A stretch of 64,000 nt of DNA. Source: Iphione sp. A-MEVVRFRX5. Taxonomy: Eukaryota. The DNA is taken from NCBI GenBank assembly GCA_976226885.1, contig OZ320319.1, positions 38,130,001-38,194,000 on the forward strand, read 5' to 3'. Below are positions 5,270 through 64,000 of this stretch, in pieces; the first letter of the stretch is position 1, and the number at the start of each line of letters is the position of its first letter. Both the position numbers and the translations under genes were made by a program. Below the pieces are notes generated by a model. That model worked only from the letters and a program-made list of their open reading frames with translations. It searched no databases and was not told the DNA's origin.

Positions 5270-5364
5270 CTGCTCGACTCATCATTGTGGGATAAGACGT
5301 TTGGAATGCATTGGAGAGCTGAGCGGAAGTGACGTATATGAAAGAGACGAAATAGCGTTACCAT
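5270..5364 (-). CDS. Candidate alternative first exon, MVTLFRLFHIRHFRSALQCIPNVLSHNDESSR|
   Basis: ATG inside an X-box, open to a weak phase-2 donor AG|gtcacg that would fit acceptor 2663. Confidence 0.15.
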
Positions 5365-5370
5365 GGGGAC
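5357..5370. promoter_or_regulatory. RFX X-box motif
   Basis: Minus strand GTCCCCATGGTAAC is an exact fit to GTYNCC-AT-RGNAAC. An ETS-CRE-like motif (5324-5335) and an E-box (5260-5269) lie nearby. Confidence 0.55.
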
Positions 5371-6889
5371 GCTGTTGAGGGGGGCGGGGGGCCGGGAGAG
5401 GAAGAACTACGAGTACCTGGGACGGGCAGGACGCCATCGGAGAGGTATGCAACAAAACTGAGTGATTTATGTGATTATCCTGTCAAAGGACGGGGCCGCA
5501 TGCACAGGGACAAAGGTAATTGGGCCGGCCCGCCATCCTGGAGCTGTTGTCGCGCATGGCCAACGTCAACGGCGCTGACCAACATAACGGCTAAGCAGAT
5601 CTATCTCGCTTTAGCAAAGCAAACTGAAAAAAATCGCAGGCCGGAAACCCGCGGCGGCGGTAGTAGTAAATGGCTGACGAGCCGTGGGAATGCCGAGAGG
5701 GAAGATGAAAGGCTCTAGACTTGGTCCGGCATCATGAGAGACTCAGAGAGCCACTATTGATTACCTCCGGTCACATAAAAGTTATTTGGCCTTCATGCTG
5801 CGCCATGTTCAGAAAACTGTGCACCTTCATCGGTCTTAAGACGGGGAAAATTGGGCGTGCTTTGCTGGACAATACGCGCGTGCCATTCCATTCATGAAAA
5901 CGGGCGTCAGTGATTCGATGTTTTATGCGAATGACAGTCGCTTTCCACGGACGAGCCCATTTGCAGCACGAGCTTGAAAACTAGCATGAATCGTGCTTCA
6001 TTGGATTTATCATTCGTCTATAGAGGAGCTAAATATATTTCCTTAGGACCTGCGCTGAGATCAATTGTCTTCGTATTAAAAAGGACTAAGTTATACTTTC
6101 GGTAACTCATTACAGAGATGTTATCCTTTGCACTTATTGAAATGAAGAATATTTGAAGGTGGTTCTTTAAATAATGCATAATGACAGGTTCAGTGTCCTT
6201 AGCACCTAGTTAAGAGAAACGTGAAAAGAAACCCCATAATATAAAGGGATCATTCTCTACAAGCCAGCATTAGCGTTAGATCAAACAAACAGATAGACTG
6301 ATACTGTTGTTGAATATAAAGAGTTGGTAATTGTTTAGTCCTGTAAGCATTTTTCCAGCATCTATCTGAATTATTTAATAAAACAAACAGAGCACTGAAG
6401 GAGAGTGTCTGATAGATTGCTTACAGAGACTCGAGAAATGAATACTAAAGTGTAAAAGTAAATGCTGCCTGAATAGAGGCCTACTGGGACACACTTAGAA
6501 TCGCTCCTCCTGAATCAAGGAAGCCGTAGAACACCCCTTCATCCGCCATTATGCACGACACTCTTGATTAGCGAAAATCGATCCTCCAATTTGCATTTTG
6601 CTACTCCCGATGGAGGCCAACCTTATGCATGTTGAAGAGTAGGTTAGATTATGTCTACACGGTCTACTGTGAATTGCAATCGTTTTATCTTCGGACGGCG
6701 AAGGTTTTGGGGCATTAAACTTGCGGCCCCTGTTAGATTTATTGACGTAAGAATGTTTTTTAGAAGACGATGTCGAAAAATGACTCACCGTTTTGGTACA
6801 GTATAGACTAATACTGAAGAAAACTTCGTCATTGTATAGTGATTCAAAGTTGAAGATATTTTAGGATGTTATATGGAGAGTTTACTTAC

Positions 6890-7072
6890 TTATCGACCAT
6901 AATGCCAGCGCGTATGGCGTTGGCCACGCTGCGGAACTTTGGCTTGTCATCGCCTCGCCGTTTGATGTTGGACATAGAACGGGTGAAGGTGAGCGCCAGC
7001 CAGTCGCGAACTTCGCTTGGCACGGCGTCCGGCTCCACCTCGGACAACTCATCCTCCTCGTCACACAGCCGC
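6890..7072 (-). CDS. PDE1: PDE1 internal exon, 183 nt, RLCDEEDELSEV...KPKFRSVANAIRAGIMVDK (autoinhibitory segment plus second CaM-binding region)
   Basis: Acceptor ttttccccctttgcag|G and donor AA|gtaagt; phase 2-2. Strong match to PDE1 RLLDTEDELSDIQSDAVPSEVRDWLASTFTR..KPKFRSIVHAVQAGIFVER. This frame is absent from the ORF track. Confidence 0.96.
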
Positions 7073-10000
7073 CTGCAAAGGGGGAAAATAAGAATCCAGA
7101 ATGAGCAGGGAAGGTGGAAGAGTATGAGTGGAGAGACACCCTGAGCTGCAAAATAGAGATCCTAAAGAGAACAAAATTTGACGTCCGTGAGTCTATTTCC
7201 CACAGAGCTTTCAGTAATGCACGGGGAGATTGAAGGCGAGTGTAATAAAATGTGAGGTATGTGCCGTAATGACGGCAAGAAAAAAACTTACATTCGGCAG
7301 GGCAAACAGGTCAATACATTTCAACAACACATTCGTAAAAGTAAAAAAATTACACTGACTCGAATGTGTTTTCCTGAAAAAAAAGAACTTTATGCATACT
7401 TATATATGTACTACAATTGCACAAAATGAATATCAAAAGGAAGAGATCGATCCATAGAATCTGTATCAGGCCTTAAACCCACAGATAAATATACAATGTA
7501 GCAAGCTGAAACACACAACATGCCGTACGAAGCCATTTCCTCCCTCAAATTCATCAATATGAAATCCTCAGTAAAATATGAGAATAGAAATGGCACGTTT
7601 TGCCAAGTTTTTGTTCGCTCTGTAAAATGACAAATGATCAATATCAGTGGTAACATGTGCGCCAGAGTACCGTCCGAAGCCTTGCAGTCAACACAATAAA
7701 GGGCGCCGAGTCTAAAACAGCTGCTATCCACAGGGGACCTAGTTTGGAGTAAAGAGATAGTAAAAAGTCAGTGAACTTAGAGAAAAAGAATGTCACAGTC
7801 ACGCATATGAAAACCAATAGAAAAAGGCACGCCAAACGTTGTTTGTCGCGTTATCTTGTGCATCGATGAAAAGGAAAGCCACATGGTTTGTATTGGTTGT
7901 TAGTCTTTGTTGGTTAGTTTGCGACTTGCGATTACCATATAATCTGGATCTCCTGCTGGTAACCGTTGTGATAGACTATGTTACATAAGCCAAGAAGAGC
8001 TCTAGAGAGAGTGGTTCTGAACAAAACAACCTGCAGCTAAAGTAGGTGGTTCCCGTCCATGCCTTCGGGTATGTGTGTATATATACAACGTACATGTACA
8101 TGTACATGTATATGATCTCTGTCGTTTTACGAGGGTTTTGTAAGAAGACGAGACTGGAGATAAAGCCCCTTTTGTAAAGAGCATCTGCCGCAGTTCAAGA
8201 TACAAAACCAACCAAAAACTCATCAGCTCATGAGCGCTTGCAATTCTAGAAATTACAAATAAATATATGACGAAAAAAGTAGCCCTACAAGAGATAATAT
8301 GCCAAAAACCCAACCCCTACCCCCACCCACCCCATAAAGGAAATACAGCTCTCGGGACTCAAAATCCACGGTCATGAGCCGAGGTCGGTAAACCCTGTGC
8401 TCTACGAGGCCAACCCCGCAAGCTATCTCGTGTGAGGAACCGACCCAGCACAAGATCGAGGTGGCACGCCTAGATCAACAATAACGTGGCCGAGTCGCCA
8501 GGCGGCGCAGTGCGGTCGACGAGAGGCCGCTAGGGGACGTCCGCTCGCATCTGCTTGCTTGGTTCCCACAGGGCCTGCAAGCGTAATTACAAATAAATCC
8601 CGCCATCATTCTCAGCTACTTGTGGATGAACTGATTGGGCTCCTGCTCCGTCATATTTTTTTCTGCCGTGCTCGGGGGACAGGAGACTCTCTTTTTTTCA
8701 ACCGTAGGGTGGTTATCAGTCGACATCGTTTTGATGCCCGGGAAACGCCACCGATGAACGCACACTTACGACAGTCTATGGCGTGTAGCCTAGGGAATTC
8801 GAGCTACGAAGGCTCATAGGTTCATCCTAGTCTGAAGAGAGTTCAAAATAATATCAACCAATCGGTAGTGTTGCGGTTTCTTTGTAAGGGTAGCTCAGAT
8901 TCTTATGAAACGGTCAATTGTTTGAAATCAATGTGTGTCAGCCTTGCTTTGTTTTTAAAAGCGAGGGGCTCTAATTGTACGAAGGATGCAGATGATCTTC
9001 CTTGTATATTTCCTAAAGGGTGGACATTCTACCCAAATTTCAGAATATATCGCATCCTCGCATGTGGTTACAAACACGTTGCTTCTTTTTGCAGGCTTGG
9101 TGTCACTGCTCATACCTTCCGGCAAACGATCGTATGGTAAGACAATTTCTACTAATAAATCATATGAACTAATGCAGTTCGTAATATCTTGAAAGATGGC
9201 CCTTCACTTTTGCTCTGGAAAAATGATTATTAATGTTCAGATACCCTCCGAATTCCACAAAGGTCTTAGTCAATCGCTAAATGAAGTGCCAGATGGTATA
9301 ATGCTAAACACATTTGAGAGTAAATGTTATTAAAGGCTTCACACAAGACCAGCTGTTATGATCCATCGGCCTGCCCCAGGCCTGATCGCCGTTTGTCACA
9401 TCTAAGCCTGAAAGCACTTCATATTCTGTGCTCATCATTGTCTTCGTATTAGAAGCAAGCAGCAGAATATGCGAAATGAAAGGACATTATGATTAAAAGT
9501 CATTTAGCAAGCCAAATCCTTCAAAATTCCTTTTTAATCGAGAAGCTTCTCCTAGTTTCAGAAGCTTTGTTAATAATGTAGCTAAAAATGACATATTAAC
9601 ATGAAATTCGTGACCAAATCCAGACAGGAAATGCCTCATTTAAGTTCACCGTTATTCCATTGTTCTGAAAATGGGCCATGCTTAAATTGATTGCAAAGGT
9701 TTTTTTTCACATGGACATGTAACAATGTTTCTAAAGAAAGTAATGCCATTGTATCTCCATGTCTGTAGGTCTATATGCCTTGAGAATTTATTCCCAGTAG
9801 GCAATAACTGATCTAGTAGTGGTTGTGGCGGGTGGTCGGAGGAGGGGGGGGGCGGAGTGGCGGTCACCATCCTTGCCATCGCTGCTAGCGTGCAGCATCC
9901 TTGGAATGTCAATTAAGTGTGTGGCTCTTGCGGATCGAGGACAATTCCGCCGCCTCCAAACCCCACACGGAGCCACACTCGGCTTCCCTCTGCATACGAT

Positions 10001-11745: not shown

Positions 11746-11840
11746 TATTTGTCTGAAAATCGGCAAAATTTAGGTGAATTCGTCCGAAAATCGGCGAAAC
11801 CCAGGCGAATTTGTCCGAAAATCAGCATGACTCAGGCAAA
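11746..11840. repeat. Degenerate 31-bp tandem repeat, about 3 units
   Basis: gaaaatc(g/a)gc recurs at 11755, 11786 and 11817. Confidence 0.75.
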
Positions 11841-12910
11841 TTCAGGCAATTAATTTGATGATGTTAACAAAATTGATAGTTACAAAATCAGCTGGTTAAC
11901 AACTTAGAGGTAAAAGAACTTATATACAACCTTCGGACAACGAAATGCATAGATATATGTGTACAGTATGTACAACTATATGATATCAGGATGAATCTAC
12001 TCCATTGAATTCACATAGTTTTCTCCTTGCACCCTGCACAATGGTACATTCGATACTCGGCAAGTTGGATGCTCGGCTTGCCTTTTCATGTTAGCCTGAG
12101 GAATATCATCGATATGTTATTCCCGGTAATCCTCCGGGAAAAACCCCTAGGTCACTAGGCCCGTCGGAATGTCAAATGATTCCTGGTCAATACTGCACCC
12201 CGCCTGATAGACAAGTAGTTCCTTTGGCAGCATTGCTACGACAAAAGGGAAAGGTGTAGCCTTCTTAAAATACTGCAACGTGGAGCTCCGTTTCGTAAGA
12301 ACAATGATAAATATATGCAAGTTACAATGTTACTTTTTTACATAAATAAGCACCTTCACATACAGAAAACCCTCTAATGCGACCACTAGTATTGGTTCTG
12401 GAAAAAAATGCCCTTAACTCTGCCCACTTCGTCGAACTGCTCACAGGGTGAGCTGCTATTGTATGTTGCGTATAGACACAAACATATGGGTGTCGTGGCG
12501 TTGTAAGATAATATGAGATCTACACAGTCCTTTACATGAATAAACTGGAAATCTGGTAGCAAATGACGTGCTTCTGTGGAAGTTGCATGTGCATATGGTA
12601 CAAGATGTTTTGTCATATGCAAATAAGAACATGACTGTTAATGGTGAACGCGAATGTGCGTATATCTCAGTGATTCCTCTTCCTGAAGCTCATCGTAAAA
12701 CCTGATCTATTTTAGGCTCTGCGAGCACCTCGCACAGCCCTAACGATAGCGATCTACAGCGCCGACGGAACTGTGTTGTGGGAGGAATCAAATAAAGATT
12801 GATTCGGCGGTGTCAATGTAAATGGTTTCCCTCGAATCAAAGACGCCTGATGTTCTGTCTGAATGTGACCTAAAGACATTTGTTGGGAGTGCTGTTATTT
12901 CAGGATGCCT

Positions 12911-13056
12911 NNNNNNNNNNNNNNNNNNNNNNNNNNNNNNNNNNNNNNNNNNNNNNNNNNNNNNNNNNNNNNNNNNNNNNNNNNNNNNNNNNNNNNNNNN
13001 NNNNNNNNNNNNNNNNNNNNNNNNNNNNNNNNNNNNNNNNNNNNNNNNNNNNNNNN
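12911..13056. other. Assembly gap (146 N)
   Basis: Run of N. Confidence 1.
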
Positions 13057-21640: not shown

Positions 21641-21883
21641 ACAAGATACAAGAAGGTTTGCCCTAGCGGCAGTCATGTGTTAGGAATGCGCAGGGTTGAC
21701 ACCCATAGATGAGTAGCCATATGCTGAACTGCTCCGCCTGAGTACACACACGTCCTACAACGAGCCACTCTATCTGGCCATAATCACGACCCCTCTCCTC
21801 CCAGCTTTTCGCCTCCCTCTAGTTTTTTTCGCTTCGTCACTCTTTCCTCAACCAGCATTTTCTCTGCGATGAACCAACGTTAC

Positions 21884-21936
21884 CGATCGGTCGGCCGCTC
21901 GGTTACCATGACAACCACCAAGCCGTGGCAGCGCCA
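21884..21936 (-). CDS. Candidate alternative first exon (coding part), MALPRLVVV-MVTERPTDR|
   Basis: aaaatATGGCG start at 21936 and a second ATG at 21909 inside an X-box. Donor CG|gtaacg is phase 2 and fits acceptor 7072. Confidence 0.4.
21902..21915. promoter_or_regulatory. RFX X-box motif
   Basis: GTTACCATGACAAC (minus GTTGTCATGGTAAC), one mismatch to consensus. Confidence 0.55.
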
Positions 21937-24900
21937 TATTTTCTGGCTGAGAGAACGGGTGACAAGCTTAAGGTAGAGCATAACCTTTATAGTACAAAGA
22001 ACCCGAAAACGCAAATCTCAACAGGACAAAATGATTTCCAAGATCCTGAAACGAAGAACACTGTTCATCAAACAATAATCAAGGTCATTAACATGGTAAC
22101 AGCAAGAATCTTCACTGAAATGTACAGTTCTTTAGTGACTTGCCTCTCTGTTATTGAAGGAAAAGGCATCGGAGAAGCAAGGGCAATATTCTATGTCACA
22201 ACAGACACAATACTGAGAATTCTATGTGGCAGTCTCACAACTGACAGCATTTGCTAAAAAAAAAAAACCAAGAATTATGAACAGAACTTAGTATGACGTG
22301 CTAATGCCGCATTGTCATGTGAAGAGGTAGAATTTGTATTGAAATTCTCTGGATGCATATAGAATTCGGGAACACTGTCCAAAACACCGTGCATAGAGGA
22401 ATACATGCAAAGTATTCCAGTTAGACTATTTGAAGTATTACATTTACCTTTAGATGCCCATGATGATGTATGTCGATTACAAAATAGGGATGTATTTTGT
22501 ATGCTAGGAACTTAAATATGAAATACCTGTCCACGTGATTCCTAGATTTCATCATGGTAGGATTTCCTCTAAGGACTTTGCGACGACAGAAACCGTGGAT
22601 GCAGGAGGAGACAGGTTTCTCAGCAAGAGGGAGCTCACCAGATACAGCGGCAAAGCAATATCGAGTACCTATCCTTCGTGTAAAGCCAAAGGTGTACCTC
22701 CATTATAGCAGTTGGCTGCTGCCTTGGCGTGTACTGAGAATTGTCCGAGGGTTAGTAGTAATGCTCGTGGTGAGAGCTTGAACGCGGCGGTATTTACATC
22801 ATATCAAGATCAAGTTAATGGGATGATATAACACACGGAACCTGAATTTCTGGATTATGCCACCTCTGTATCAAATTAACAAAGTAATGCTCAAGTAATG
22901 CAAAAACTTGATCCGGGGAGTGTAATTTGAAACAGAACTTGACTGGTGTATTCGTTGGTGGTATTCCCGAAAAGCAGTCGTTCCTTATTAGAGTAAAAGG
23001 GCTGAGAAGTATCGAATAGACCTACTGTCTGCAGGAGTGAGTAGGTAATAATGACCAATCATTTACTGTTTTGCATGGACGCCCTTCATTGTAATGACCA
23101 GATAATCAGCCCTGGTTCTTCTGCATGGTTGAAGACGACCTTTATCAGGTAGTGTATGACTCACTTGCGGCTCTAGGTCTTACGGTACTTGGGACGCTTT
23201 CCTTTCCCCATGGCACCCTATGGCACCCTAATGGCATATTAGCATCATTCATGAATGCCCATCGCCGTCCCCAGAAAACTGACATTTACACAGCCGACCT
23301 TGATGGTTGTATATGGGGGTTGTCCACTAGTGTCTACTCAACATCCACTCGGGATGACCTATTGGTGGCCGCAAAAAACCGTCGGGTCTAGGCTATGGCT
23401 GCAATTTCATGCTGGGGAATGTTTACTAGTGTCCGGTGTCACCTATCAAGGGGACTACATAAGTGTCACTTTGTGAGTTATTTGTTTGTACGCGAGCACG
23501 GCCGAAATATATTGTGGGACGGATCCTGTAGCATGTCCAGGCTGCGATCGTCTAGCCGTCCACGGAGTGTTATTCCTGCCACAAGTCTATACCTTCTCCA
23601 CGTTTCTTTGACACTGCCAATGGGAGCCAAATGCCTCCCTGGAGCCCCGCCACTCGACTCCAGTGCCCATCCATCGCCGTAAAATAGGCGCTAGGAAGCC
23701 CGTCCTACATTAATCCGTGAGAGAGGAGACGATGCCACACCGTGCTCACTGACAGTGCCAGGACGGGGCGCCCCGGAGTCTCACCAGCTCACAGACTTGT
23801 GCAAATACAATGGTGGCGCCTGGCTCGTTCGGAACCGTGGCTTCAGTATTTGCCAGGAACTGCAAAGGCCGTCGAGTAACTCGGAGAGGGAAAAGTGCTC
23901 TCGGCAGCGCCCTACTGACCCGTCTGTTTGGTCTTCGTCCGAGGATTCCTGCAGTCGCCTTCTTCAAGGGCGAGTTTCTCCATATGGTGCAGCCAGCTCC
24001 TTCCCCCGAGCTTGGCACACAGATAGACCCTTCTGTCGTGCCGTCCGTCCTCCAGCGTGGCGCCCTGTGCGACAGCCGTCGGCAGCGGGGCGCCGGCGAG
24101 CAGGAGATGTGCAAATGAGTAGCGCATCCAACTCTCAGTCCAGGGATGCCAGCTCGCCAAGCCGTAGGCAGCCGAGCGCAATGATTCTACCGCTTCTCTG
24201 TTTCCGAACCTGTTGTCACGTTACGCAATCTTGAAGAAAAGCTTTCCTGACAAGCGCTAAAGCGTTAGGGCGATGGGAGGAAAAAGAGAATTGCGCTGGC
24301 GTGTAATAAAAATGTTTCCCCTGGCCTTGGCGGGTTGTTTACCGTGTGTGCTTTCGCATATGGACAGAAGTGAGGAATCCAGAGGTCTTATTTATGTTGA
24401 GCAAGAAGGGCAGGTTAAATCCAGACTCTATTTTTCTTGAATGCGAGGTTGTATGAGGACATCCTGAATGGGATCCTTATACTGAAAGTAAAGAATGTGA
24501 ATCAGAATTACGCTAATGATTAAGGCCTGATAGTGTCCTATATTTGTATCCAAAATGATTTCCATCCATAGCTTCTCCTATGCGTGTCACACACCCTCTG
24601 ACGATGGCACTTGTATTTCTCTCCGCGTGATTGACTATTTGGCCCGACTCGAACGAAACTTGATGGAGGAGTTGTACCCAGCGAGCAGGGTACCTAAACT
24701 AAATCCTCCCTTCTTCCTGCTACATATGGGAACCACAGATGTTAGTGTGCCATTACGGTTCGTGACAAGGCCTTTCTGGTTGCTTCCGTCACGGCAAACA
24801 CATCCGAAGGGGCGTGGCGATTACCGTGTTCTGCCCTCGTGTCAGCTGCATTTTACCAAGGATACACACGTCCAGGTGAAAATGCACATTACTCCGATAA

Positions 24901-27562
24901 ATTAGCGTGATCCAAGAAGTGCTAGTAGTATGATGAAAGTCGGGTTAATGACTGGCATGCGTGGATGGTGCCTGCTTAGCTCTAGGAGACGGGAGAGGGG
25001 AGCGATGCGGCCGGTCCAGGCCTGACACTCACAGCCAGCGCTGAGACCACAGAGGCAGATGTGCAGAGGGAGGAGGAGGAGAGGAGAAGGAGGAGGAAAG
25101 GACGGCGGATACAGAGGCTAGAGACAGCGGGAAGCGCTGAGGGAACTGCTCGCAGGTACTCCGATCCAATCGCCCTGCTGCCGCTGCTTTCGGCCCACAG
25201 AATCGCTCGCACCCGGCAGCATCACCGCCATCGGCATCAACCTCGGCGGAGGCGGCGATGTTGGCGTTGGCGGCGTCCGCTTCCAGCTGCTGCTGATGCT
25301 CGTCTTCCCTGCCTGCTTGCTCCTCGACGCAGGAGAACTTGCTCACCTGTGCTCAGGGCTGCACCCTCCTCTTACGGGAAAGCTGTCACCAGAGGCGTGT
25401 GGACTGGGCTACTAGGACTGTGAAAGTAGTAGTAGAAAATGCCGCCGCCAACGCAGCAGGCAGAATTGTCGTCGGCCCAAGCGCGTGTCAAGTGTGTATT
25501 TCAAGAACTGTCCTGCAACTAAAATTGACATGCGGGGCCCCTATCGTCATTCGGTGGTACCACGTCCGGCCAATGTACAGTTAATACCAATCGGAGACTA
25601 GTAAGCTACGAAGCTGATAGCAAAGCCTGCTGTCCAAACATGCTTCTGGCAAGTTGCAAGGACGGAATTCAGAGAGAAGAAACACCAAGGGCATTATTCT
25701 TACGCCAGGTGTGTTGCCATATAATCATTGATATTTAGCATGTTACTGTTACTGTTACGGCAAGTCATGGTCACTACTTTTACTTCACCTGCTCTGAATG
25801 CACGTTGTGACGTAAATCAACATTTATTATTTTAGTGGCTTTTTCTCCAAGGATTCCTTTGATATTTATTCTGCCCCATATATTGATCGCCCATTTCCCT
25901 CTGTATTATTTGTAGTCATAACATGTTCAAGCCTCAGAGCAATAATCGAACAGCGAAACCAGTCTTATTGAGCCAGGAGCCAGGATGCCACATCTCACTA
26001 TACACGAGTGTGATCACTGAGATTGGCATTAAAATCAGCCTTCGCGGCCATTCTCCGGTGAGCAGCTGGATTAATCAAAGCATGAGCATTAGCGACAGCA
26101 GCGGAGACGAGAGAAGGAGCACAGCGGGCGACTAGTGAGGAGACAAGGCGCCACCAGCGGCGCCAGCTGCAACGAGCGGAATGGGAGCAAACGCCAGGGT
26201 AAATGGAGAGTGGCTCAGGGCTGGCCTGGTTTGCTTAAAAATCCCCATTGGCCTGTGGGGCTAAGTAAGGGGCCAGCCAGGCCGGGCCAGTACTTTACAC
26301 GTCTATCTCACGAAGAGGGGGCGAGCGGCTCATATATAATGGGATACATGATGAATGTGATATGTTTTCTGATATTGCATTTGCAAGCAGCGGCGCGTCT
26401 ACTGTACGCCGAAAAACAAATCAGTTAGGAAGCATATGCTAACGTGCGTTTGTTCCCATTAGATATCAATATTTGTTTATGATCCCATAGGGAAAAGGAC
26501 GTTTCGTATTTGGCTGGGAACAATTGAGTAAATTATGTCAATGTAAAGTCCATGGTGTTGATGCTTTGCTAACTGGAATACCTATTTGTAACTGAGTGCA
26601 TACAACAGAATAGCCGTGTTGGTGAGTCTACGGTCGTTTAGGAACTATTAACAGTACATGCTCACTTTGCTCCCGTCGACAGTCTGCGCACGGGGACATA
26701 CGAGTTATTGTCAATCACGGAAAAATAATAGAAGAGAAAGGGAACAGAACAAACGTCATGTTTTATCATAGAGATAATTACCACTGGATCAATGACAACC
26801 TATTTGTTTGGATATGGAAAATATTGATGATTAAAGTCTGCATCATTATATATGCTTTACACATGTACAATATTGCATCTTGAAAGCAAGACAGATTATG
26901 AAGCTAAGCAACTAGATGACTTCAAAGTAGAAGGCCCTCTGTCAATATACGGTTTGTTTGGTCAATAGTTCTAATAGAATGAAATTATTTGTATGCGCAA
27001 TGTTGGATTCCAAATGCAAATCAAATGATAACAAGAAATCTGGAAAAACTGACATATTACCCTGTTAACTGTCCAAATACAACTGGATATGTTTGCTAAT
27101 GATATAATGTTAAACAAGGTTTTCCACCAACCAATGCAACATTATGAGTGCAGTAAGTTCTCTGCGTACCTTCATTCAAATGGTTTCAAAGATACATAGG
27201 CACTTGTTCTGCTCAGGTAACAGAATGCAGGCACATGTAATAATCCATTATTAGTGGTGAGGGTTGACCTTTGGTTTACATGTTTTTACCTCGGCCGTCA
27301 CAGACAGCAGAAACCCTGTAAGGCGACCACAAAGGGGGCAAGTTTATTCTACCCTAAGGGTCGGTTGCCTTACATGCGTTGAGGTGTTTTCATCTGCATT
27401 TCCCGTCTGTGTGCATTAACATGTGCATTTTACATGTGTTTTGCTTTCATGCAGCCTTACAGATAGGGGTGTCTATTGACAGTGCATTTATGATCTGTAA
27501 AATCTATGATAGATCTTTGATAAATGTATGAAAAAGGAGAAAATGTAGAAAAACTGCTGTTT

Positions 27563-27750
27563 CATGGAGATTGTGGCAGATCCATGGAGAAACTGCCCTG
27601 ACAACAGTGAATTTCAGGGAGAACATGCTGCAAAATGGCTATTTCATGGAGATTGTCGTAAATGCCATGGAGAGAGTGTTGAAAATTGCAAATTTCAAGG
27701 AGAAAGTGCTGAAAACGGCAAATTTCATGAAGAGACTGTGGAAAAGTGGT
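27563..27750. repeat. Degenerate 30-bp tandem repeat, about 5-6 units
   Basis: Units start at 27600, 27630, 27681, 27711 and 27741 (gaaaa..gcaaatttca.ggaga); gives a 10-aa periodicity in ORF 27564..27752. Confidence 0.7.
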
Positions 27751-30592: not shown

Positions 30593-33452
30593 CGTTCTAA
30601 CAATCAGCCAGATGCTGTATGTATCACATATTTTAAGTAAATCTACAGCCAAATAAAATTTTTATCAAGGCATGGGAGTAAGGGGTTCTTCAAAATAGCT
30701 TCAGTGGCGTACTGGTTCCACCTCTTTTTTTCTTTTATCTGTGTACAATCTATATCAAAGGAATTCTGTTTTCCGTATATATTTTTCCCTTCATTTCGTA
30801 TTGAATGGTTCATTCGTTAAAGGGCGCGTCCTGGAAACCATTGATATGCATTGTGTATAAATCTTTTCATTATAAACTTCTCTCGGCATTCTATTTACTT
30901 TTTGGAACCTGGTCTTGTATATTTTTGTCGGAGGCATAGCTTCAAAGAGCCTTTTGAATCCAGGAAAGGCATGGTCGCTCTATAAATAACCTGGAAAGTG
31001 ATTGATACAGATCAAAGTGGAAACAATCAATAAACAATACCTTTATTTCCAATACTTGCGTTCAGAATCACCTGGAATTTCATAAGTACCTAGATATGTT
31101 TGCATGTGTTCTGTGTAAGCGGCTACGTGAAAACTGTAGTATTACGAATTATGATTGCTCTCTGATGAGGCCAGTTTTGCTTAATCCATCAGTGTAGGTC
31201 ACTGGCATGAACCAATTTTCAGGACCTTGCCAGATGCGTGCTGAAAATTATGTACAGAAGATTTGGATCGAAGAGTTATTTCGAATAACAGCGTCTATGG
31301 GCTGGTGAGGGATTAATTAACGTTCAATGGCCCATACCTGAGGATTTGCGATGCAGACAGACAAAACCTTTGATTAATGGGCGTTGGGGTCCTCTATTAA
31401 ACGATCAATGACCGCACTCGGCAGGTGTCACCAGGGAAACATGTACTATGTACAAGCTAGTTTATGGCTACAAACTGCCAGTACACGATGCTGCATATAT
31501 TGAATCAGAGTGGAACATGTCGTCAGAGGGGAAAGTTCCATGCTGCTCACGATCGATGGGTAGTTGTAAAATCTGTACTTATATAATTATATACATATAA
31601 TATTAGACTTAGGTTTAAAAAAGAGGACCAAGCTCAACTGACAACAAACACGTGTAGGTTTCCGAGAAAAAAAATAATCCACTCGTCGCAAACAAGACAA
31701 TTGGTCGGATAGCTCCAGGGGCAGTAACCAATGCAACGGATGTCCCTTAGCGAGCTGGTGAGAGTGGCTGGGCGGTAATGAGTGGCTCATTTGGTGGGTC
31801 ATGGGTGGCTCACATTATGAAGATTGGATTAGTTCAGGTTATTATGGACGGAGATTCTGCAGATGAGTTGTCGGTGGGGATGGTGATGGCGAAAGGGAGC
31901 ATGTTGGTGATTGCTGCAAGGTTACCACCAGCTGGTGTTGGAGTGCAGCGGTCAGGTTCTGCGGAAGGCTACGCGAAGGCGAATTAACAGGGCCATTATA
32001 GGACTGAAGGACGGTATCATTTTGAGTGAGCGTGCCCTGTGAATAATACGGAGACTTGCTTAAATATCGTGTGACAGGCTTGAGAGGACAGCTGTGAGAA
32101 TGCCACTCTCAGGTTAGCCTAACTACGTCCTGTAATACCTTGAAGACCTTATGGAGAGATATCATTTAGTCTCTGACAGCTATTAAGAGGAAACATGCCG
32201 CCAAGACTAAACTGATTAATTGCAACAGTGCACTAGATAAAGGTGTTTTAGAGTTCATCCTACAGTGATTGAAAATTCTAACGATTAAGGTTCGCTTCCT
32301 CAATTTTGAGGAACACGCAGCTTTGCTAGATAGGCCAAGGACTGTCACGACGGCTAGGCTGCCCAATCAGAGTGGACAGTTGCATCCTTTGGAGACCTGA
32401 TACAGACACTAATTCCACAGGATGCTTCGGGTCGAAGGTGGGGGCGGTGGGAGGGGGAATGCGGGGAGGGTGGGCGCCAGTAGGACAGCACGCTGCGTAT
32501 GTAGCGGTGAAGCTTTCGAGCCGGTAGGCGTGGTGGTATGTAAGGGTCCGATGGAGGCCGAGTAGGCAGTGGATGTCTTGGTGGCGGATGGTGGGTGGTG
32601 GTGATGTTTGTAGGAGGCATTTTGGTGTTGCGGCAGTCCGGCATCGAGCATAAGGGACTTGAGGCGCGACAGTTGCCAATGCTTGAAAACGATACGTCAG
32701 GGCATATTGGCAGGAGCTAAGGCAGCAATGCCACCAGCTAGGTGTGATTCACGCCAACTAGATGCAAACAACAACGGCCGCGCCTCGGGCAGTAATGAGA
32801 CTGCTTCCATCAGTCCAGGAACAGGTCACACTCATGGCGAGGCAGCGCTATCGATGAGGCAGTGCAACATGAATGCATCGGAAATGAAAGGGGCGGTCCT
32901 GACGTACCCCATTCCCACATGAAGTTCCAGAGACTTATATCTATGGTATTTTGTGACTGAGTAGTTGTAGAGTGCATGGGTAGAGACATATCATGTGTAC
33001 TGTGTACATTTCCGTCCGGGAGTATACTTGCGAACCCCCCTCGAGCGGGTTTCTTGCTTTTAAGGATCAAATATACCAAGTCAATCGGGACCTCACAGCT
33101 ACCGCCGTAGACATATGATTAGCGTGTCAAAGGTCTCCGATTGCTTTACATTGGAGTTCAGCGGAAACGGGTATTGGCTGGTACTCCGGAAACATTAGTG
33201 CAAGGGAACCAAACAGATGACGCAATATTTGTATGTGAATGTCAATATAGTTGCAGTACAGCAAGGTGTCTATGATGGGTGAATCCTTTTAAGGGACTGA
33301 GATCTTGAATAACCCAGGTAATTAATATGGCTCTGGTGCAAGGGGACTCTCCTGAATTGATTATGATTGTTATGACTACTCTGAGTCAGCTTATATGAGA
33401 TGAAATATTCAGTCTTCCTGCTATCAGATAACGTCCCATAAAGGGTCAGTAT

Positions 33453-45585: not shown

Positions 45586-46836
45586 CAAGAAGCTGATATT
45601 TGGAAAGGTTTTCAAAAATAGATATAAAGACAATGGATCTTAAATGGCCCACTGCATTTTTATTTTATAAAACCGTACACATGTACACTTATTCTCTGTC
45701 CTATCTACCCTCTGTTTTTCTCCCATCTTTATGAATACAAAGTGGGCTATTTTTCTTATTTAAAGGGACGGCCATACCATCTCTGTTATAGTTCCCTTGG
45801 TGACTTCATGTGTGGTCATTTCAATAACAACGACAGGAAGCGGTATTTAAATAAACGTATCCTACTGTAATGAAGCCTTCATATAGTTCTCTGTGTAGAG
45901 ATGCACGACTATATATGGCTTAAACCGAATTGTGCTGGAATAATAGCCCAACCGATAGAAGGTATAGAGGATGCTATCTACAAACAACAATCAACCTGGA
46001 GGATTGGTATATTGACTGTGCCTAATGACGACTCTAAACCGAACTGTGTTCATGTCACGGCAACTTTAATGTATTTCGACAGTAGTTATCAATGTTTCTG
46101 TGATATGCTGGAATTAGTTAAGGTATCTTTCGTCAAGAGTCCCCTGGGAGATGGTAGGGGAGAGTATTCTTCATTGCCTGACAACCCTTTCAGGTATATA
46201 CGTCAATTAGTGGTCAGTCCTGCATATATAGAGAAGAGATTCACTTCCGTTTGACGGTTTCTTCCATCTTGACAACACCAAAACTATTTTGAGATGACCT
46301 CGATGACGTAAATCATTGATAACTTGGAAAAAATAAGCAATTGGCTATTTATTGCACGAATCCCTTCAAAACTATTCTTCTATAATAGAGATACCTTTTT
46401 TGCATTTTACTTTACATCATACATCGAATGAAAAGTGAGATAAATACTTGGCAAGAGATTGGTTTCAAGTTAACCTATCTTTGAATATTACCCCTCTTTA
46501 TTAACTGATAATACTTTAGTGACTTGCTATGTAGTTGCGGTATATGATCATGTTACTCTCCCACAATTATAGAAAACCGTTATGGACTAATGCGCATTTT
46601 CTCAATTTAAACCGTTTAATAAACTTTCTAAACATTACTGGCAAATCAAAATATAGTTGTACATTTCACCCAGTGGCACATCAAAACCATACTGGAAATT
46701 GGAAATACTGGAATTGTAATAGAAGTACTTCTAAACCCTTTTACAAATAAGCCCCGATGTCCATTTAGTTTGAATGGACAGGTTACAGCCAAAGGCATTA
46801 AATTTGGTCTCTGCTTCTCATGTGCATGTTTTATAG

Positions 46837-56122: not shown

Positions 56123-56259
56123 CTAAGATGGGCTAGCCGTTCGCTTCCAAGGAAAGGAAAGAGGAACACTCGGAATGGAGAGAGTAAGGGCGTGGGCCGA
56201 AGGGTAGCACAGCTAAGTTTAGTTATTGATCTTTTCCGACATGACGCCTCTGAGTCCAT
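56123..56259 (-). CDS. Candidate alternative first exon with GC donor, MDSEASCRKRS...ERLAHLR|
   Basis: ATG at 56259; AG|gcaagt is a consensus GC-AG donor in phase 2 and fits acceptor 39462. Confidence 0.2.
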
Positions 56260-57976
56260 TTACATCTCTTGACCTTTGTCTCTCCACCACAGCATAATTC
56301 TGCTCCTTGACCTCATATTTGTCGGGCTGTGCTTGTACCTTCTAAAACACAGCCTCACAGCTCACTTCAACATTACCACTGGAGCGTGCTAAAATTTCAA
56401 CTTTGAAGAGATCTTGTTACAAGGATTGGGCGGATAAGATAAACAAAACATCTCACAGAGGTCTGCATGTTCCTGATCTCTTGTTTCCCTACTGTTGGTG
56501 ATGAATAGACAAACAAAACGTACGGTCTTTTATAGACTTGACATGCAAGTATTCTTCCTATGGCATTTTACATAATGCCAGTATAGGATAACCAAAGTTT
56601 TGTGAGGGACTACTCCGGAGGAGAACAACAACGTATTATTCTTTGAAGCGGAATTGTATGAATCATGCGATATTTTAGGAAGCTCTTGAGTGCGACAGTT
56701 TTGATCTGGGAAGAAAAACTCTTTTATCCCGAAGATTAGGTTTCTCACTTAAATCAACTATGCACCGTAAAGTGGAAAACAGATAACAGTTCTCCTCTTG
56801 CCTTTGACGGTAATGGTTGTAAACTTATCCAGGCCGTTTGAAGGCAACACCAGCTCGTTGATTCCGTAAACGAGACTGAACCATACGTTTATATTTCCAC
56901 AGCTGGCACCTATCGTGTCCTTAATTCCTCTAATGAAACGTTGTTATACAAACCAGGACTGTTCAGATATACCTGATCAGCTCACATCTGATTTCTTAAG
57001 AGGCTTTTAATGATACATACAAAAATTACAAATAGAGTACTACATGAGTGCGGCCCTCACAGGAAAAAACATGTAATGAGGGAGACCTTCAATTGTTTGG
57101 CACAAAAGAAAGACAAAATGAGAATTAGTCAGTTTGCTCAGAATTTAAATGTTTACAATTACATGGACATGCACCCTTTATATACATGTATATATTAACA
57201 GAACACATCTACTGAAAGTAACAGGTTTCGATGTAGACAATCAAACTACTACGTTTCTGAGGTGACGTTTGATATGCACTATTCGGCATGGCAGCGGCCA
57301 TCAGTTGCATCAGAATGACATCACTCTCCGGATGCTCTGTACATAAGATCAAACAGTAAAACAAAGATACGCTGATAGATGGTAGGGACCTTTGGTGGGG
57401 CTAGAGGTGATTTCACAGGTCGATCACTACAGATCAGTCATTGCCAGGAAAAGTGAACAAAATGATTGATACCGAGGTCTATCTGGCTAAACTAGACGTG
57501 TCGCCCACACGAGGTATCACTCAAACGGCTCTTGCTGGCAAAAATAGCCTTTTATAGATTCCCCTAGACGAATTAGGAAAGTGAGGGATTGGAGCTCAAC
57601 CAAGATGGACGGTTTGAGTGTAGGTTCGGCTCGTACGATCTAAAGTTATTTTATATGCAACAATTCTTAGCGTAACTGCTAGTTCGTAAGAAAGACTATG
57701 ACAATGCTGATTTGAAAATTCAAACGCCGTAGAGCTTGCCCAATTCAACGATAAAGCCGTCTTTCTTACAATATGGACGGTCTCAAGTGAAACCCTGCCA
57801 TCAAGGCAAGGTCAGATTACAAGTGTATCATATATACATGTAACGGTATCACGTGTAACGGTAGGAGTCCCAATTCTTTATCACATAATATCGATTAAAT
57901 TCCTCGCAAAATGTCGCAAAACGGTGAAGTCCCTGAGAGGAATGTGTGCAGCAGTCGCGTAATGTGAGTTGCTCAC

Positions 57977-57990
57977 CGATCGGTTACCAT
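57977..57990 (-). CDS. Candidate alternative first micro-exon (coding part), MVTDR|, ATG inside an X-box
   Basis: gtttctATG GTA ACC GAT CG|gtgagc: strong donor, phase 2, fits acceptor 39462 (CG|A = Arg). Confidence 0.4.
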
Positions 57991-57996
57991 AGAAAC
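57983..57996. promoter_or_regulatory. RFX X-box motif
   Basis: GTTACCATAGAAAC, exact fit to GTYNCC-AT-RGNAAC. Confidence 0.6.
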
Positions 57997-60301
57997 TCGG
58001 CTCTGAGGGTTTGTGTACAGCATCAGATCTCTCTCCCAGTGTTGAACATCAAAGCATGTCTATCTCCGAGAACACCTGCCTACCTGAGCAGGCCTAGGGG
58101 TACCCTAAAAGCACAGACACATTCAAAGCTGACGTAATCACAGCGACTTACGGTTGGCTTTCAAATGCCATTAATCCTGACTGATTTGTCGGTACTTAAT
58201 GTGTGTTGGTCTTATCTGTGGTGTGCTACTGCCACCATTGATAAGGATCATTTTAAAATGTAAAAACAAAGTGTCTACATGCTGTGAAGGACCTACCCTA
58301 CAATCAGTTCTAGCAAACTACCTTTCCACGAATCAGAGAGAAAAGGGGCAAAAAACAAGAATTTATTGAAGCATGAGAGATCGATATTCTATCTTATATT
58401 ACAAGTGAACCAAACCCGCTGAGGCCTTGTGGTGAATGCATTGGTAAAATAATGACAGTCCATGACAGTGTGGTAGGAGAAAAATGACCAGATCTACTAC
58501 ATACCATGTTGGTTAAAAGCAGAATTAGGTCATAGTTTAAAAAAAAGTTGCCGCTGGCCGGTTTTCACACGTCAGTAACCTAGCCGTATCTGCCCCATGG
58601 ATTACATTAACAGAGGCACTCCTCCCAGGGAGAAAGATTGATTCAAACAAACGAATGCCAATTACTAATGGTCTAACGTTACTATCCAACCTGGGAACAA
58701 TCTAGGCGTCCTTTTGTTTAATGAGATCTGAAGTCTTCGACATACTTGAGCTATAGTTTTGCACTTCTGGACATCCAAGGTAGAAAGAAAGACCATTCAA
58801 GAATCTTCGTGTGTGGTCCACACCCTGGCATCTTCCCAACCGCCCCCCCCCCCCTTCCCATATTATGAATCAGCAGTTTTCGGTCGGTCTTAGTCGAAGG
58901 TTGCTGCGGCTGCTTTGATCCAAACTCCGTGTGTAGCATAGAGATAAGGCTAGAGATCAATCCTTACCTCGGCTCTGCCCTAACGGCAAGGATCCATTGA
59001 TTATAAAGCCATGGATCGTGTGCATACTATAGTCAGATGCAAGATGTTTCTATTCAAATACAATGTACCTGAAGTTCATAACTCTGTCCAGCTGCCTGGG
59101 ACACGTTCTACCGAGCTCAAGCCATTAGCATAGAAATAACATTATTGTTGAGTGATAAGATATTGCAAACTGCCTACTTAGATCAACACAGCACTGAGTG
59201 ATAAAGAGTCGTAGATATTGAATCTGTCTTGACACCGTGAATAACCCGGAATGTAACAGTGTATAAAGAACCGTACACATTGCAGGACTGTTGGCAGGAT
59301 TTATTATTTGCACCCCGAGGTAATGATTAAAAGCATTTGTGGGTCCTTGGTCATAAGGTTTCTATTAGAAAGGGAACTATCTAAAACAGAGAATGACTAT
59401 ACCTGCACAGAATAAACACCGCCCATGTAGAAAGGTAAGATTTGTTGGGCGTGGGCAAACAGTATATTATAAGCGTTCGAACCAAACGCCAATGTACGAT
59501 GGTGCAGCGGTGACAGGTGGACTGAAGTCGAAACGCAGCCAAACCATCAGAGTGCTTCGCGACCGCTTCTTTGATCTGCCTAATGCGACATGTTGGTGGG
59601 TCCATATACGACTGGGAGATGACGCATCTTGTGAACGCTTGTCTTAATCACGCTGCTAGAAGCCCTGTTTCACCTTCTAAGAGCAAAGTGTTCGAATTTT
59701 GCCGTTTGTCGAAAGGTTACGAGGCAGAGGTCATAAGATCTTAAACAAGATAATGTATTCTTAATTAGTTTTGATGTTTACCATTTGGCCCTCTAATCTG
59801 TCCAATGTAATATGTAGATACATGTATATATGTATGGTAAATACTTAGCATAGTTCAAAGGTAACAAAATATGCTACCTATATTTCTTAGATTTATTTAG
59901 TTTAAACGGTTCATTCATACAACATGTACATGCATTCATATTTGTATAAAGGTACAGGTGTGAAGATCTTTAATGGTAGGACCACACAGAATTTAGCCTC
60001 AGGGGAAACTTAGGAATTTTCTCAGATACAGGTGACTTTGCAAAGGTAATAATGACCTTCTAACACCAATTACTGTCTTCCTCCATTAATTAATTACCTT
60101 TTTGGTTAACCAGAACTGCCTTTGTATCAGATTCGGGTGAAAGCCTGGCATTTCGTTCTTTGCCTATTTTTGGTTTCTCCAAATATTCAGCAGCTGAAAA
60201 TGCTTCTTCTTACTGCATCGACATGGTAATCAAATATTATCAGCCTCCGTTGAAATGGGAACAATCTGTTAAGTCTTGGATGACCTCTAGATAGTCTCTC
60301 T

Positions 60302-60306
<5 letters not shown>

Positions 60307-60332
<26 letters not shown>
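60307..60332. repeat. (GA)13 microsatellite
   Basis: Direct read. Confidence 0.95.
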
Positions 60333-60394
60333 AGGATATAGCAATGACAATAAACTGTGATATTTCTTACTAGCTGCTGTGAAAAGGCAGCTGA

Positions 60395-60750
60395 GGGCCA
60401 AAAAAATAGGTGTGTTTCTGGTAACCCACCCCTACCTAGTAAAACCTTACCCTACCTAAAATATTTTTGGCCCCAAAGAGTTTCCAAGGCTGAATTTTCT
60501 TAGATGTGTGTTTTCACAGTGCATGTATATGTTTTTGGTAAATTAAATTGGTAAAAGTAGAAAAACAACAAAATCCATGAAATTTCAGTAAAAACAACTG
60601 TAAATTGGTCAAATTTCTTCATACTATCTTTACTATTATTGAAAACTGGGGGAAGAAAGTGGAAAGACAATTTAGAAAAAAAAGATTACCCCCTCCCTAC
60701 CTGGGTTTTTGGGTGGTCATTACCAGAAACACACCTATTTTTGGGGGGCC
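60395..60750. mobile_element. MITE of the GGCC-terminal family, 356 bp, 3-bp TSD TGA
   Basis: Perfect 23-bp inverted core AAAAATAGGTGTGTTTCTGGTAA at both ends; TGA at 60392-94 and 60751-53. Confidence 0.85.
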
Positions 60751-61457
60751 TGAGCCATTTAAGATTAAAATGGACCCTTCAATCGCTCAAACTTCCTGTC
60801 TTGATATAAATCCTCTGCTAAGTGAAAAGGAAAGGCTCTCCCCTGGTGGAAAGTCAATGACCTAGTGTCCATGTTACTGAAGCTTTCCTTTTCGTGGAAA
60901 GACACTGTAGACAGCTGTTGGCCTATGTCTGCATATTATGGCTTCAGCTTGGCTTAGAGACGTGTCATTCTCATCACCGCAAATACATGTGGCTCCTCCA
61001 AGCACCTAATCAGAACTGCTGGTGCGAAAACCATATGAATGATTGAAGGGGGGCAATCAATGCAAGTTCCAATAAGCACTTTAGTCCGTACTTCTATGGA
61101 ATGAATTATACGGTAACTCGTCTTTGTTCCATCAACCAGAAACAGACCGATATGAATAGCACTTGGAACTGTAACATTCAACAATGACAATCACTCATTT
61201 GAAGGCCACGCGTATCTAATGGAAGCCAAAAAGGTAAAGTATGGGCGTCTGGCAGTACATGTCAGATTGTTAATATTTTGGTTATTTAACTGTCAAATCA
61301 GCGAGGAGACGATTCCCTTACATTACCCCTATTTGTGACAGGCCCGGGGAGCAGCGCATTTAATACCGCTTGATCAAAACCATAATATGTGACTTTGTTT
61401 GGTGAAAGGAACCACTCATAAACCGGGCTCGGCAGCTGCATGTTCGGACTCCATTAC

Positions 61458-61503
61458 CTAAACGTCGATATGGCAACACGTTGCTCTCGGAGAGGCAGTT
61501 CAT
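61458..61503 (-). CDS. Candidate alternative first exon, MNCLSESNVLPYRRLG|
   Basis: ATG at 61503; donor TTA G|gtaatg is phase 1 and fits acceptor 45151. Contains an imperfect X-box. Confidence 0.22.
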
Positions 61504-62668
61504 AGGGTCACGCAAGGGAAAAGCATCGCTGCCAAGAATTGGTTTGTCAGGCAGGTGAGTTGTGTCAGGCCTTGAGAGCGTGTTCCCAGATAGGAAGGAG
61601 GAGTGAGATGAGAATCGCCGAGCGCTCGCTGATGTGGGCGCTGTGAAATAGGCTGGTTCAACCGCTAGTAGCTGTGTGAGTCCGACAGATATGTTTCAAG
61701 ATACGAAACGAAAGCAGGAAACGGTTGGGTTTGTCCCACCAAATTCCTCTGCCATCGCGTTTTACTTGTCAAGTGGACTTAATTGTGTCTAACTTCACTT
61801 AGGTTCATGAAAAACGGTTTATAACACATACATGGGTCTATTTTCCTATTTTATATAATTACACGTTCTAGTTAAGAAATACATCGGAAAATTACCCTTA
61901 ATATACATGTAATGTGAATACATATATTCCACTTTAAAACATTGATACAACGTTTAAATTAAGAATGTCTCCAGTCGAATCAAATATGTTAAAGCCATTT
62001 AGCATGCCATCATGGCTAAGAATATGTGAGCAGTACTAAGTCACCCGGGCAAAATACGTTCGATGCGGGATATATTTATATAATGTTAAATGTGGTTTTC
62101 TTTTTCATTATTCAATCCACATCAACGATGGCATACTGTCTCCTGGGCCTCCAGTCAGGCAATTTAGGTACGGGAGTACCATTTAACACCTGTCGCACAA
62201 AGGCAACTGACACTGGCTGTGTGCCGATGAAAGCTCGAGTGTTGCTCTGATACGACTAGCTCAGAATGTATAATCAGGAATTATCATACACCTGACAAGC
62301 ATGGCTATCAGTCTGAAATGAACGTATGACAATATATCCTGCATCCCTTCAATAATACTCGCTATTTAAATCGTCAGTACCATTGATGACTGGAGTATAT
62401 AAAGTACACTTTAGATAGCTATCCTCGATGTGAACTACAAGTATTCTGAAACAGTTAAATTAATAGTCTGAATCGTGGTGAAGGATGAAATTTATCTAGC
62501 CGATGATTTTCAAAGATCTCTTTTCACGAAAACAAATGGTTAATTCCTTCCTGGAATATTCAGAATCATATCATTAGGTATATGGATACAAACCAATCGC
62601 TTTACAAACTCCTCCCTATCATTCCCAGCCTAATCACGAGAAACAAGTAAAATATATGTTGATCCTAC

Positions 62669-64000
62669 CCTTTCTCCTGCGAGCCCACAGCTCACTGGCT
62701 TTCGGCTGGCGCACAGTAGGACCGGCATTTTTGGGGCATCCTCTATGGTGTTGATGACAAGAGTGGCCCAACGACTTGTCATGTGCGGAATCTGGAGATG
62801 TGACGTCATCATCGTCATCTTCGTTGATGGACAGGAGACGCTCATTACCGAATGGAGACGCCCTCGCCCGACGCCTACCACTGGTTGACTGTCGAGTTAC
62901 CTTGGGTTCCACGGCCCTGCCACTGCTTGCGGACCGCAGTTTTCTCTCAATGCCCTTTTGGAGTGCCTGCACATCGTCGTCGTCATCGTCTGTAACGTCA
63001 TCCGTGACGTCAGATTCGTCACTGTCATTCAGATCGCCGCCCTTGAAACACGAGTGGTTGTGTCGGCGGGAAGGATGAGTTGTTCTCTTGTCGGAATCAT
63101 TTCCTCGGGTGGCTCTGCTTACGTCTGAAGAACTTAAACGCTCCCTGAGCGGTTCTCTTAGCTCGATATCGTGAATTTCTGGGGAATGTTTGGGGTCTGT
63201 ATTTGTTCTATGCTCATCGGGTGCAATTGTCGATTTTCTAAAATTTGATTGGGGAGCTAAGCTGATGGACCCCTTTCCCTTTGGAGCAGGGGAGACGGCC
63301 GCTGTCTTTTTGCAATTGACAATGTCAATGAGAGAGACAGTGACAGTCACAATGGACGTCGAATCGTAGCTGTCATCTGATGTTTCGTCCTCACGGGTTC
63401 CCCCGGGCTCCGAGCTGTGGGGCCCTGGCTCCTGAGGCGTGGTTGGGTCATCCACTTTTGAGTCCTTCAATGCCACCAGTTTGCTCTCTTTTAGTAGATC
63501 CCCAGTAACCTGCTCAGAGTCGGGCGACCTCAGCTGAGCAGAGAGCATACTTGGTAACATACCGTGCTGCTGCTGGTCTTCCTCCTCTTTGGCTGGTTGG
63601 GTATGGACCACCTGCATGCTGTCGGCGACATAGACGTCTTCTACATGACCAGCCGTCTCCATGGTAACGCTTCTGGGAGATTCCTGTTGGTTATCGGTCT
63701 CTGCGACCGACTTATCCCCATCGGGACGCACCTGGCGATCGCTGTCGCTTGTTCGGGCATCTTCACTTTGGTAGTCTGTGTGTTCCGCAAACTCGGTCTC
63801 GTCAGGCAGCGGCCGGGCATATATTGGCTGGCGGCAGAGAGCGGCGCTTTCTGGCAGAGGCCCTTCGGCAAGAGCACTGTTTGCCATGTCCTCCTGGTCA
63901 ACAAAGACTTGGAAGACCGGAGGCTTTTCTATCATCCTATCTTTTCTGTTTGGGTCACAAACAGGCTGCGTTTCATTGGCCACCGGCGGGGGCGCCGCGA
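62669..64000 (-). CDS. PDE1: Large acidic, Ser/Asp-rich exon open to the window edge; probable long N-terminal exon of PDE1
   Basis: Over 440 open codons. The track's start at 63983 is GTG and the frame stays open to 64000. Donor AAG G|gtagga is phase 1, matching acceptor 45151 (G|GC = Gly). Linkage to PDE1 is inferred from phase and strand only. Confidence 0.7.
63655..63668. promoter_or_regulatory. RFX X-box motif inside the acidic exon (encodes V-T-M-E-T)
   Basis: GTCTCCATGGTAAC, exact consensus fit; the central ATG (63662) is in frame with the exon. Confidence 0.45.

Follow-up and report, generated by a model that had tools for sequence, protein, structure and literature searches.

The minus strand of the window analyzed here, 64,000 nucleotides of contig OZ320319.1 from Iphione sp. 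A-MEVVRFRX5 (forward-strand positions 38,130,001 to 38,194,000; coordinates below count from the first base of the window), contains the 5′ regulatory half of a gene for PDE1, the Ca2+/calmodulin-dependent phosphodiesterase. The PDEase_I catalytic domain falls beyond coordinate 1. Spread over 58 kb of the window are four strong X-box motifs of the RFX type and about three to nine weaker ones. A sequence-only reading of this DNA had taken the four strong motifs for a ladder of start codons, each opening a different PDE1 first exon.

The PDE1 gene model rests on exon boundaries read in the sequence and on comparison with relatives. The exon at 7072-6890 matches the Pfam family PDEase_I_N (PF08499) at 6.3e-28. 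A library-wide HMMER search with this exon, followed by a word search with abalone PDE1, yielded 276 relatives. Using tblastn of these relatives against the window, five exons were located on the minus strand, in the order found in mollusc and annelid PDE1. The first, at 55245-55180, is a conserved exon of 66 nt, the 'ANPP' exon (V/ANPPERAKDDSTVINRNGQLT/R, slashes marking exon ends), which is in phase 1 at both ends and was missing from the earlier gene model. It is followed by exon 2 at 45151-44974 (TGSLTV...HVSSL; phase 1 in, phase 2 out), exon 3 at 39462-39349 (LRLIIKKLQ...YIDET; phase 2 in and out), exon 4 at 7072-6890 (phase 2 in and out), which carries the PDEase_I_N domain including the second calmodulin-binding region, and exon 5 at 2663-2597 (IYRRMSSTVGL...; entered in phase 2 and left in phase 0). 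The canonical junctions are 55180>45151, 44974>39462, 39349>7072 and 6890>2663; the four acceptors already proposed, 45151, 39462, 7072 and 2663, and their phases were right. The closest relatives were a metatranscriptome PDE1, P0223, and that of Capitella, which share with it motifs absent from molluscs, such as HVSS[LM]R. The gene is thus probably a lophotrochozoan, annelid-like PDE1, as judged from these protein comparisons. PDE1 of molluscs, a brachiopod and an annelid (Crassostrea, Haliotis, Octopus, Lingula and Capitella) has the same exon series: ANPP, TGSLTV, NLEYAA, DELSEVEP and IYRR. The best genomic fragment reached has non-alignable introns, and even its best-conserved exon is only 73% identical at the nucleotide level.

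A motif scan returned three exact matches to GTYNCCATRGNAAC, at 5357, 57983 and 63655, and one single-mismatch match at 21902, as the sequence-only reading had stated. The match at 63655-63668 (plus strand) has a CCATGG core and lies inside a long coding-like open reading frame (ORF). That at 57983-57996 (plus strand) has the ANPP exon 2.7 kb downstream. The mismatched site, 21902-21915, fits the Caenorhabditis elegans consensus and lies in the exon 3 - exon 4 intron. The match at 5357-5370 (minus strand), again with a CCATGG core, lies in the exon 4 - exon 5 intron, inside a CpG-rich, promoter-like hub. Strong X-boxes thus occur at about 1 per 16 kb of the window. Sites 57983 and 21902 have the flank CCGNTCGG in common. 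To these are added X-box-like sites of the same motif series whose spacer holds no ATG, at 31427, 45791 and 57253. Two of them, absent from the earlier account, have one mismatch each: 45791-45804, with spacer AA, is 640 nt upstream of exon 45151, and 31427-31440, with spacer AG and a further near-match beside it at 31724, is in the exon 3 - exon 4 intron. Some of the X-box-like sites stand in pairs 0.2-0.8 kb apart (21902/22087, 31427/31724, 57253/57983 and 18151/18952), a mild degree of clustering reminiscent of homotypic enhancer clusters.

The excess of these motifs was evaluated within this 64-kb window, against shuffled sequences and Markov models. Exact matches to GTYNCCATRGNAAC numbered 3, as compared to 0.01 in dinucleotide shuffles and 0.024-0.037 under Markov models of orders 0-5. 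Because GTYNCCATRGNAAC could have been tuned to its hits, we also scored an independent pattern, the published C. elegans X-box consensus, worded GTHNYY AT RRNAAC (bioRxiv 10.1101/2020.08.21.260547). For this pattern (GTHNYYATRRNAAC), 4 matches were observed against 0.38-0.46 expected under the Markov models, with P of about 8e-4. When every one of the 4096 six-base palindromic half-sites was scanned without preselection, allowing up to two mismatches, GTTACC ranked 49th, with 8 sites against 1.7 expected; among the half-sites listed, the top-ranked were all AT-rich and simple-repeat-like. Spacing mattered as well: the same half-sites gave 13 near-matches at a spacer of 2 nt, as compared to 6, 3 and 4 at spacers of 0, 1 and 3 nt. 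Finally, the window holds six ATGGTAAC octamers, and four of them are paired with a GTNNYY half-site.

Two trivial sources of the motifs were rejected. Composition was ruled out, as the excess holds up to Markov order 5 and depends on spacing. A repeat or transposon family was ruled out because the flanks are unique: when those of six sites were compared, no alignment was found between them. The X-box cluster is therefore real, goes beyond composition and is not a repeat family. Its hallmarks are a 14-bp imperfect inverted repeat that fits the published consensus at four sites, the excess over composition and the 2-nt spacing of the half-sites.

The surroundings of site 5357 are the most promoter-like part of the window. 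The segment 5250-5550 of the exon 4 - exon 5 intron is CpG-rich, with an observed-to-expected CpG ratio of about 1, and contains CCAAT boxes. Within 200 bp on either side of 5357 there are a GC box, a cyclic AMP response element (CRE), an ETS core, CACGTG and two YY1 cores, that is, 6 elements against 0.66 expected. On this sequence evidence, the hub could drive a minus-strand PDE1 transcript or an unannotated plus-strand transcript.

The reading we prefer, to which we give roughly even chances, is that the X-boxes are RFX-bound cis-regulatory elements of an annelid-like PDE1 locus and not a ladder of start codons. That RFX binds these sites, that they are active in regulation and in which cell types they act are inferences from the DNA sequence. 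Under this reading, an RFX dimer would contact two half-sites, GTNNCC and GGNAAC, set 2 nt apart. The X-boxes would then act as enhancers within introns, except that one or more, in the 5.3-kb hub, would be promoter-proximal and perhaps one or two would belong to a distal zone of 5′ exons at 57-64 kb. RFX would in this way couple PDE1 transcription to a programme such as that of ciliated sensory cells or sperm, and the central ATG would come with the motif and say nothing about where translation starts. Of the earlier proposal that RFX-linked promoters could give rise to PDE1 isoforms, RFX-type regulation remains reasonable, the motif being enriched and spacing-specific, whereas the ladder of start codons is not borne out by the tests described below.

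Several results weigh against RFX-bound regulatory elements at this locus. The pattern GTYNCCATRGNAAC was partly fitted to its own hits. A literature search returned no paper linking RFX X-boxes to PDE1. The PDE1 locus of Aplysia (115 kb) has no X-box in the equivalent introns; its 2 matches to the nematode consensus, as compared to 0.7 expected, lie elsewhere. The Capitella PDE1 locus (36 kb) has no match to the nematode consensus, and two looser matches fall outside the gene body. Because Aplysia and Capitella are distant, these loci count only against the intronic sites being deeply conserved. Moreover, the excess, measured in this window only, may be a property of the whole genome instead of PDE1.

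This last point can be developed into the strongest alternative, namely that X-box palindromes are common throughout the genome, whether through mutation bias, through dispersed elements of old age or because RFX sites form a genome-wide landscape, and that their link to PDE1 is incidental. The Aplysia and Capitella PDE1 loci, which show no enrichment, are consistent with it. However, composition alone explains neither the excess at Markov order 5 nor its dependence on spacing, the flanks are unique, and the Mercenaria PDE1 model that begins MVTMET, considered below, hints at an old link between motif and gene. We consider this alternative possible, at about half the weight of regulatory elements acting on PDE1.

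The sequence-only reading had assigned each X-box to a separate first exon whose start codon it covers, with starts at 63662, 57990, 21909 and 5364 spliced to 45151, 39462, 7072 and 2663, respectively, so that the calmodulin-regulatory region would be lost stepwise. The central minus-strand ATG is indeed present in all four X-boxes, but it is built into the pattern and so is uninformative: CCAT in GTYNCC-AT-RGNAAC is ATGG on the opposite strand, so that one strand always holds an ATG, and both do where the core is CCATGG. The X-box-like sites without ATG do not fit the ladder either.

The donors of the proposed first exons were evaluated using a rough matrix, on which all 1321 minus-strand ATGs of the window were scored. 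For 52-56% of these ATGs, the frame meets an in-phase GT ahead of any stop; an in-phase donor with a score of 0 or more is met by about 11%, and one with a score of 3 or more by 2-3%. The five genuine PDE1 donors, judged by this matrix, scored 1.0-5.3. The donor of ATG 63662, G/GTATGT (GT at 63562), lies 100 nt downstream and scored 3.3; that of ATG 57990, CG/GTGAGC (phase 2, GT at 57976), lies 14 nt downstream and scored 3.2. Both are credible and within the genuine range. The candidate donors of ATG 21909, CG/GTAACG (GT at 21883), and of ATG 5364, AG/GTCACG (GT at 5269), are weak; their scores, -0.3 and -0.5, are below those of all five genuine donors. Thus all four frames are open to a phase-fitting GT, as had been claimed, and two of the four end at a donor of doubtful quality. 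The phase fit is itself expected, because phase 2 is shared by all acceptors from 39462 on, and phase 1 by the two before them, 55245 and 45151.

The proposed junctions fared unevenly. ATGs 21909 and 5364 are in frame with the next downstream acceptor, whereas 57990 is not: joining its phase-2 donor to 55245 shifts the frame and leads to a stop after about 14 codons. The junction 57990>39462 would require that two conserved phase-1 exons, 55245 and 45151, be skipped. For 63662>45151 the phase fits, but the junction skips the conserved ANPP exon, and 55245 fits equally well. Joining the phase-1 donor 63562 to 55245 gives Val, as in the ...I/V-ANPP of the orthologues. Given the conserved ANPP exon, 63662 is more likely to join 55245 than 45151. 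In addition, 57990 and 21909 are preceded by in-frame ATGs, at 58023 and 21981, respectively.

Site 63655 poses a further difficulty for the ladder. It lies within an acidic, Ser-rich ORF of 449 codons on the minus strand (63983-62634), which is open to the window edge, shows codon periodicity throughout and extends for at least 107 codons upstream of ATG 63662. The codon positions of this ORF are biased: position 1 is G-rich and T-poor, and position 2 is A-rich. The same bias is present in the 321 nt before ATG 63662, in the 100 nt after it and in the 894 nt beyond donor 63562, in each case above that of intron controls. As the bias is alike on both sides of the ATG, the X-box is more likely to be within coding sequence than at its start. 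The ORF has phase-1 donors after 63563 and after 62669. No homologue of it was found at 247-785 aa, and Pfam returned no match on this ORF or on the ORFs near 5357, 25.3 kb and 61 kb. From its sequence features, the 449-codon ORF is a probable long, lineage-specific 5′ coding exon of PDE1; possibly, it is the last exon of a neighbouring upstream gene.

The relatives bear on the ladder in both directions. Alternative 5′ exons, which the sequence-only reading had expected of PDE1, are the rule among their annotated isoforms. At least four first-exon types are joined to the ANPP exon, and other first exons join exon 2 (Octopus), exon 3 (Lingula P0240 and Capitella P0239) or exon 4 (P0052). We also observed that, in the locus sequence L001 (6749-8125) and in P0007-P0009 and P0151, the exon-4 sequence (RRLCDEEDELSEVEP...) runs on from an upstream Ser-rich ORF of 250-420 aa; as exon 4 is continuous with that ORF, an isoform bypassing the first calmodulin-binding region would exist in those relatives. 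Joins to exon 3 (P0240, P0239) and exon 4 (P0052, P0007-P0009) are what the ladder would predict at two of its rungs. No isoform starting just before exon 5 was found among the 276 relatives.

Overall, the ladder can claim four in-phase readings from ATG to GT, two donors of a quality equalled by 2-3% of ATGs, a TATAAAG at 21991-21985, 76 nt 5′ of ATG 21909 and one of 12 such heptamers on the minus strand, the promoter-like surroundings of 5357, the first-exon joins of the relatives and the MVTMET start of the Mercenaria model. Against this stand ATGs intrinsic to the motif, two donors at a level that about 11% of ATGs attain, the skipping and frame shift at 57990, the upstream in-frame ATGs, the coding-like context of 63655, the X-box-like sites without ATG and the lack of a start before exon 5 in the relatives. 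We consider a four-rung ladder unlikely and, for the most part, a by-product of the letters of the motif and of the uniform intron phases of this gene. The case also carries a caution: an X-box with an AT spacer always holds an ATG, and where one phase is common to most introns, an in-phase ORF running to a GT is to be expected.

A related proposal is that only 57990-57977 (MVTD+R) and 21909-21884 (MVTERPTD+R) are real, as duplicated, alternative coding micro first exons, which the X-boxes overlap for regulatory reasons. Of the 8 bases next to the X-box, the two sites differ in a single one, at a third codon position, which changes Asp to Glu. The only two exact copies of CCGATCGGT in the window are at these sites, the 12 extra nucleotides at 21902 keep the frame, and both modules end in CG/GT in phase 2, like the genuine exon 45151-44974. 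However, the likeness stops at about 20 nt, and the alignment score was 14 against a null mean of 13.2. The shared flank has an estimated P of about 0.01 after multiple comparisons, and it may partly belong to the RFX motif. Exon skipping would still be required for 57990, and donor 21883 is weak. We regard duplicated micro-exons as improbable. A more extended homology of the two modules, including shared MLY upstream starts, was examined and rejected as not significant.

The Mercenaria lead concerns site 63655. The annotated PDE1 model P0201 of this clam (Mercenaria mercenaria, assembly GCA_021730395.1), whose gene spans 423 kb, begins MVTMET, and VTMET is the peptide encoded by GTTACCATGGAGAC, the minus-strand reading of X-box 63655; the clam match is thus at the level of the peptide, where it is compatible with a conserved site. 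Among the relatives, 117,040 residues in all, no other peptide was compatible with an X-box; the N-termini of the other mollusc, brachiopod and annelid PDE1 proteins are unrelated to the X-box peptides. A search with residues 1-62 of P0201 matched only P0201 itself, and BLASTP of the P0201 N-terminus against the N-terminus from the window gave no alignment. The MET start of P0223 was set aside as a coincidence, as the P0223 DNA is without the left half of the motif. One may suppose, from the shared peptide, that an X-box in the translated start of a distal PDE1 5′ exon is ancient and was kept as VTMET in this annelid-like genome and in Mercenaria while the surrounding protein diverged, and that the 57990 and 21909 modules are duplicated micro first exons driving, through RFX, isoforms that lack part of the calmodulin switch. 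We hold little expectation that this is so. If it were true, the ancient X-box, or VTMET, would tie Ca2+-gated cyclic-nucleotide breakdown to a ciliary or sperm programme across Lophotrochozoa.

Other features of the window were recorded as follows. The intron of 32 kb that separates exon 39462-39349 from exon 7072-6890 is interrupted by an assembly gap at 12911-13056, which affects neither exons nor motifs. Around the gap there were no PDE1-like coding match and no flanking repeats, and no reading frame runs across it. As the junction 39349>7072 and the candidate junction 21884>7072 both span the gap, the length of this intron is uncertain and a hidden exon is possible. On the minus strand, 61112-61168 is a candidate exon of 57 nt, in phase 1 on both sides (...GLFLVDGTKTSY/), with a weak donor, C/GTATAA, and no ATG. 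It resembles the 5′ exon motif of the orthologues, F.LDGT..../V-ANPP, and lies at an equal distance from the junction. A GC-rich zone at 23700-25500 contains, at 25034-25346 on the minus strand, an ORF of ~105 codons that ends at a consensus donor, CT/GTGAGT, in phase 2 and would fit acceptor 7072. This ORF is without an in-frame ATG, and long ORFs occur on both strands of the zone; it may represent an alternative 5′ exon, a cassette exon or nothing more than a GC-rich island of low complexity. At 27534-27745, in the exon 3 - exon 4 intron, there is a tandem repeat of 2.5 copies with a period of 82 nt and an overlapping period of 30 nt; the short ORFs on both of its strands are repeat artefacts. 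An Rfam scan of the window found no RNA family.

The arrangement at this locus can be compared with known X-box systems. In vertebrate genomes, conserved intragenic and distal X-box palindromes occur, including in introns, and are taken as enhancers or RFX-bound elements. Those sites were defined by cross-species conservation or by chromatin immunoprecipitation (ChIP), whereas the sites in the window were defined by sequence motif. To our knowledge, PDE1 is not among the known X-box genes. With respect to the DAF-19/RFX promoters of C. elegans ciliary genes, all four main sites fit the consensus: they are imperfect inverted repeats of 14 nt and have AT as the spacer. The nematode X-boxes usually occur once per gene, within a few hundred bp upstream of the ATG, as exemplified by that of spd-5 at 181 bp (bioRxiv 10.1101/2020.08.21.260547). 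In contrast, the window has 4-13 sites over 58 kb, in introns and in a coding-like exon.

The comparison with mammalian PDE1 is similarly mixed. The variants of mammalian PDE1A, PDE1B and PDE1C differ in their N-terminal regulatory region and in their sensitivity to Ca2+, and the exon layout of the window matches that region. For the mammalian isoforms, however, no link to RFX is described, and isoforms lacking one or both calmodulin-binding domains are only proposed for the gene in the window. Motif-centred starts yielding Ca2+-independent forms of the enzyme would be new; the tests made here do not support them. X-box elements and PDE1 genes with multiple promoters are already known kinds, and the possible novelty is the link between RFX and PDE1, together with the VTMET lead.

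PDE1 couples Ca2+ to the breakdown of cAMP and cGMP and, in mammals, is present in olfactory cilia and sperm. If RFX binds the sites described here, the RFX regulon of a lophotrochozoan would be extended to PDE1. That would provide a simple transcriptional explanation for cilia- or sperm-specific expression of PDE1 and would make this locus a test case of X-box arrays inside a gene.

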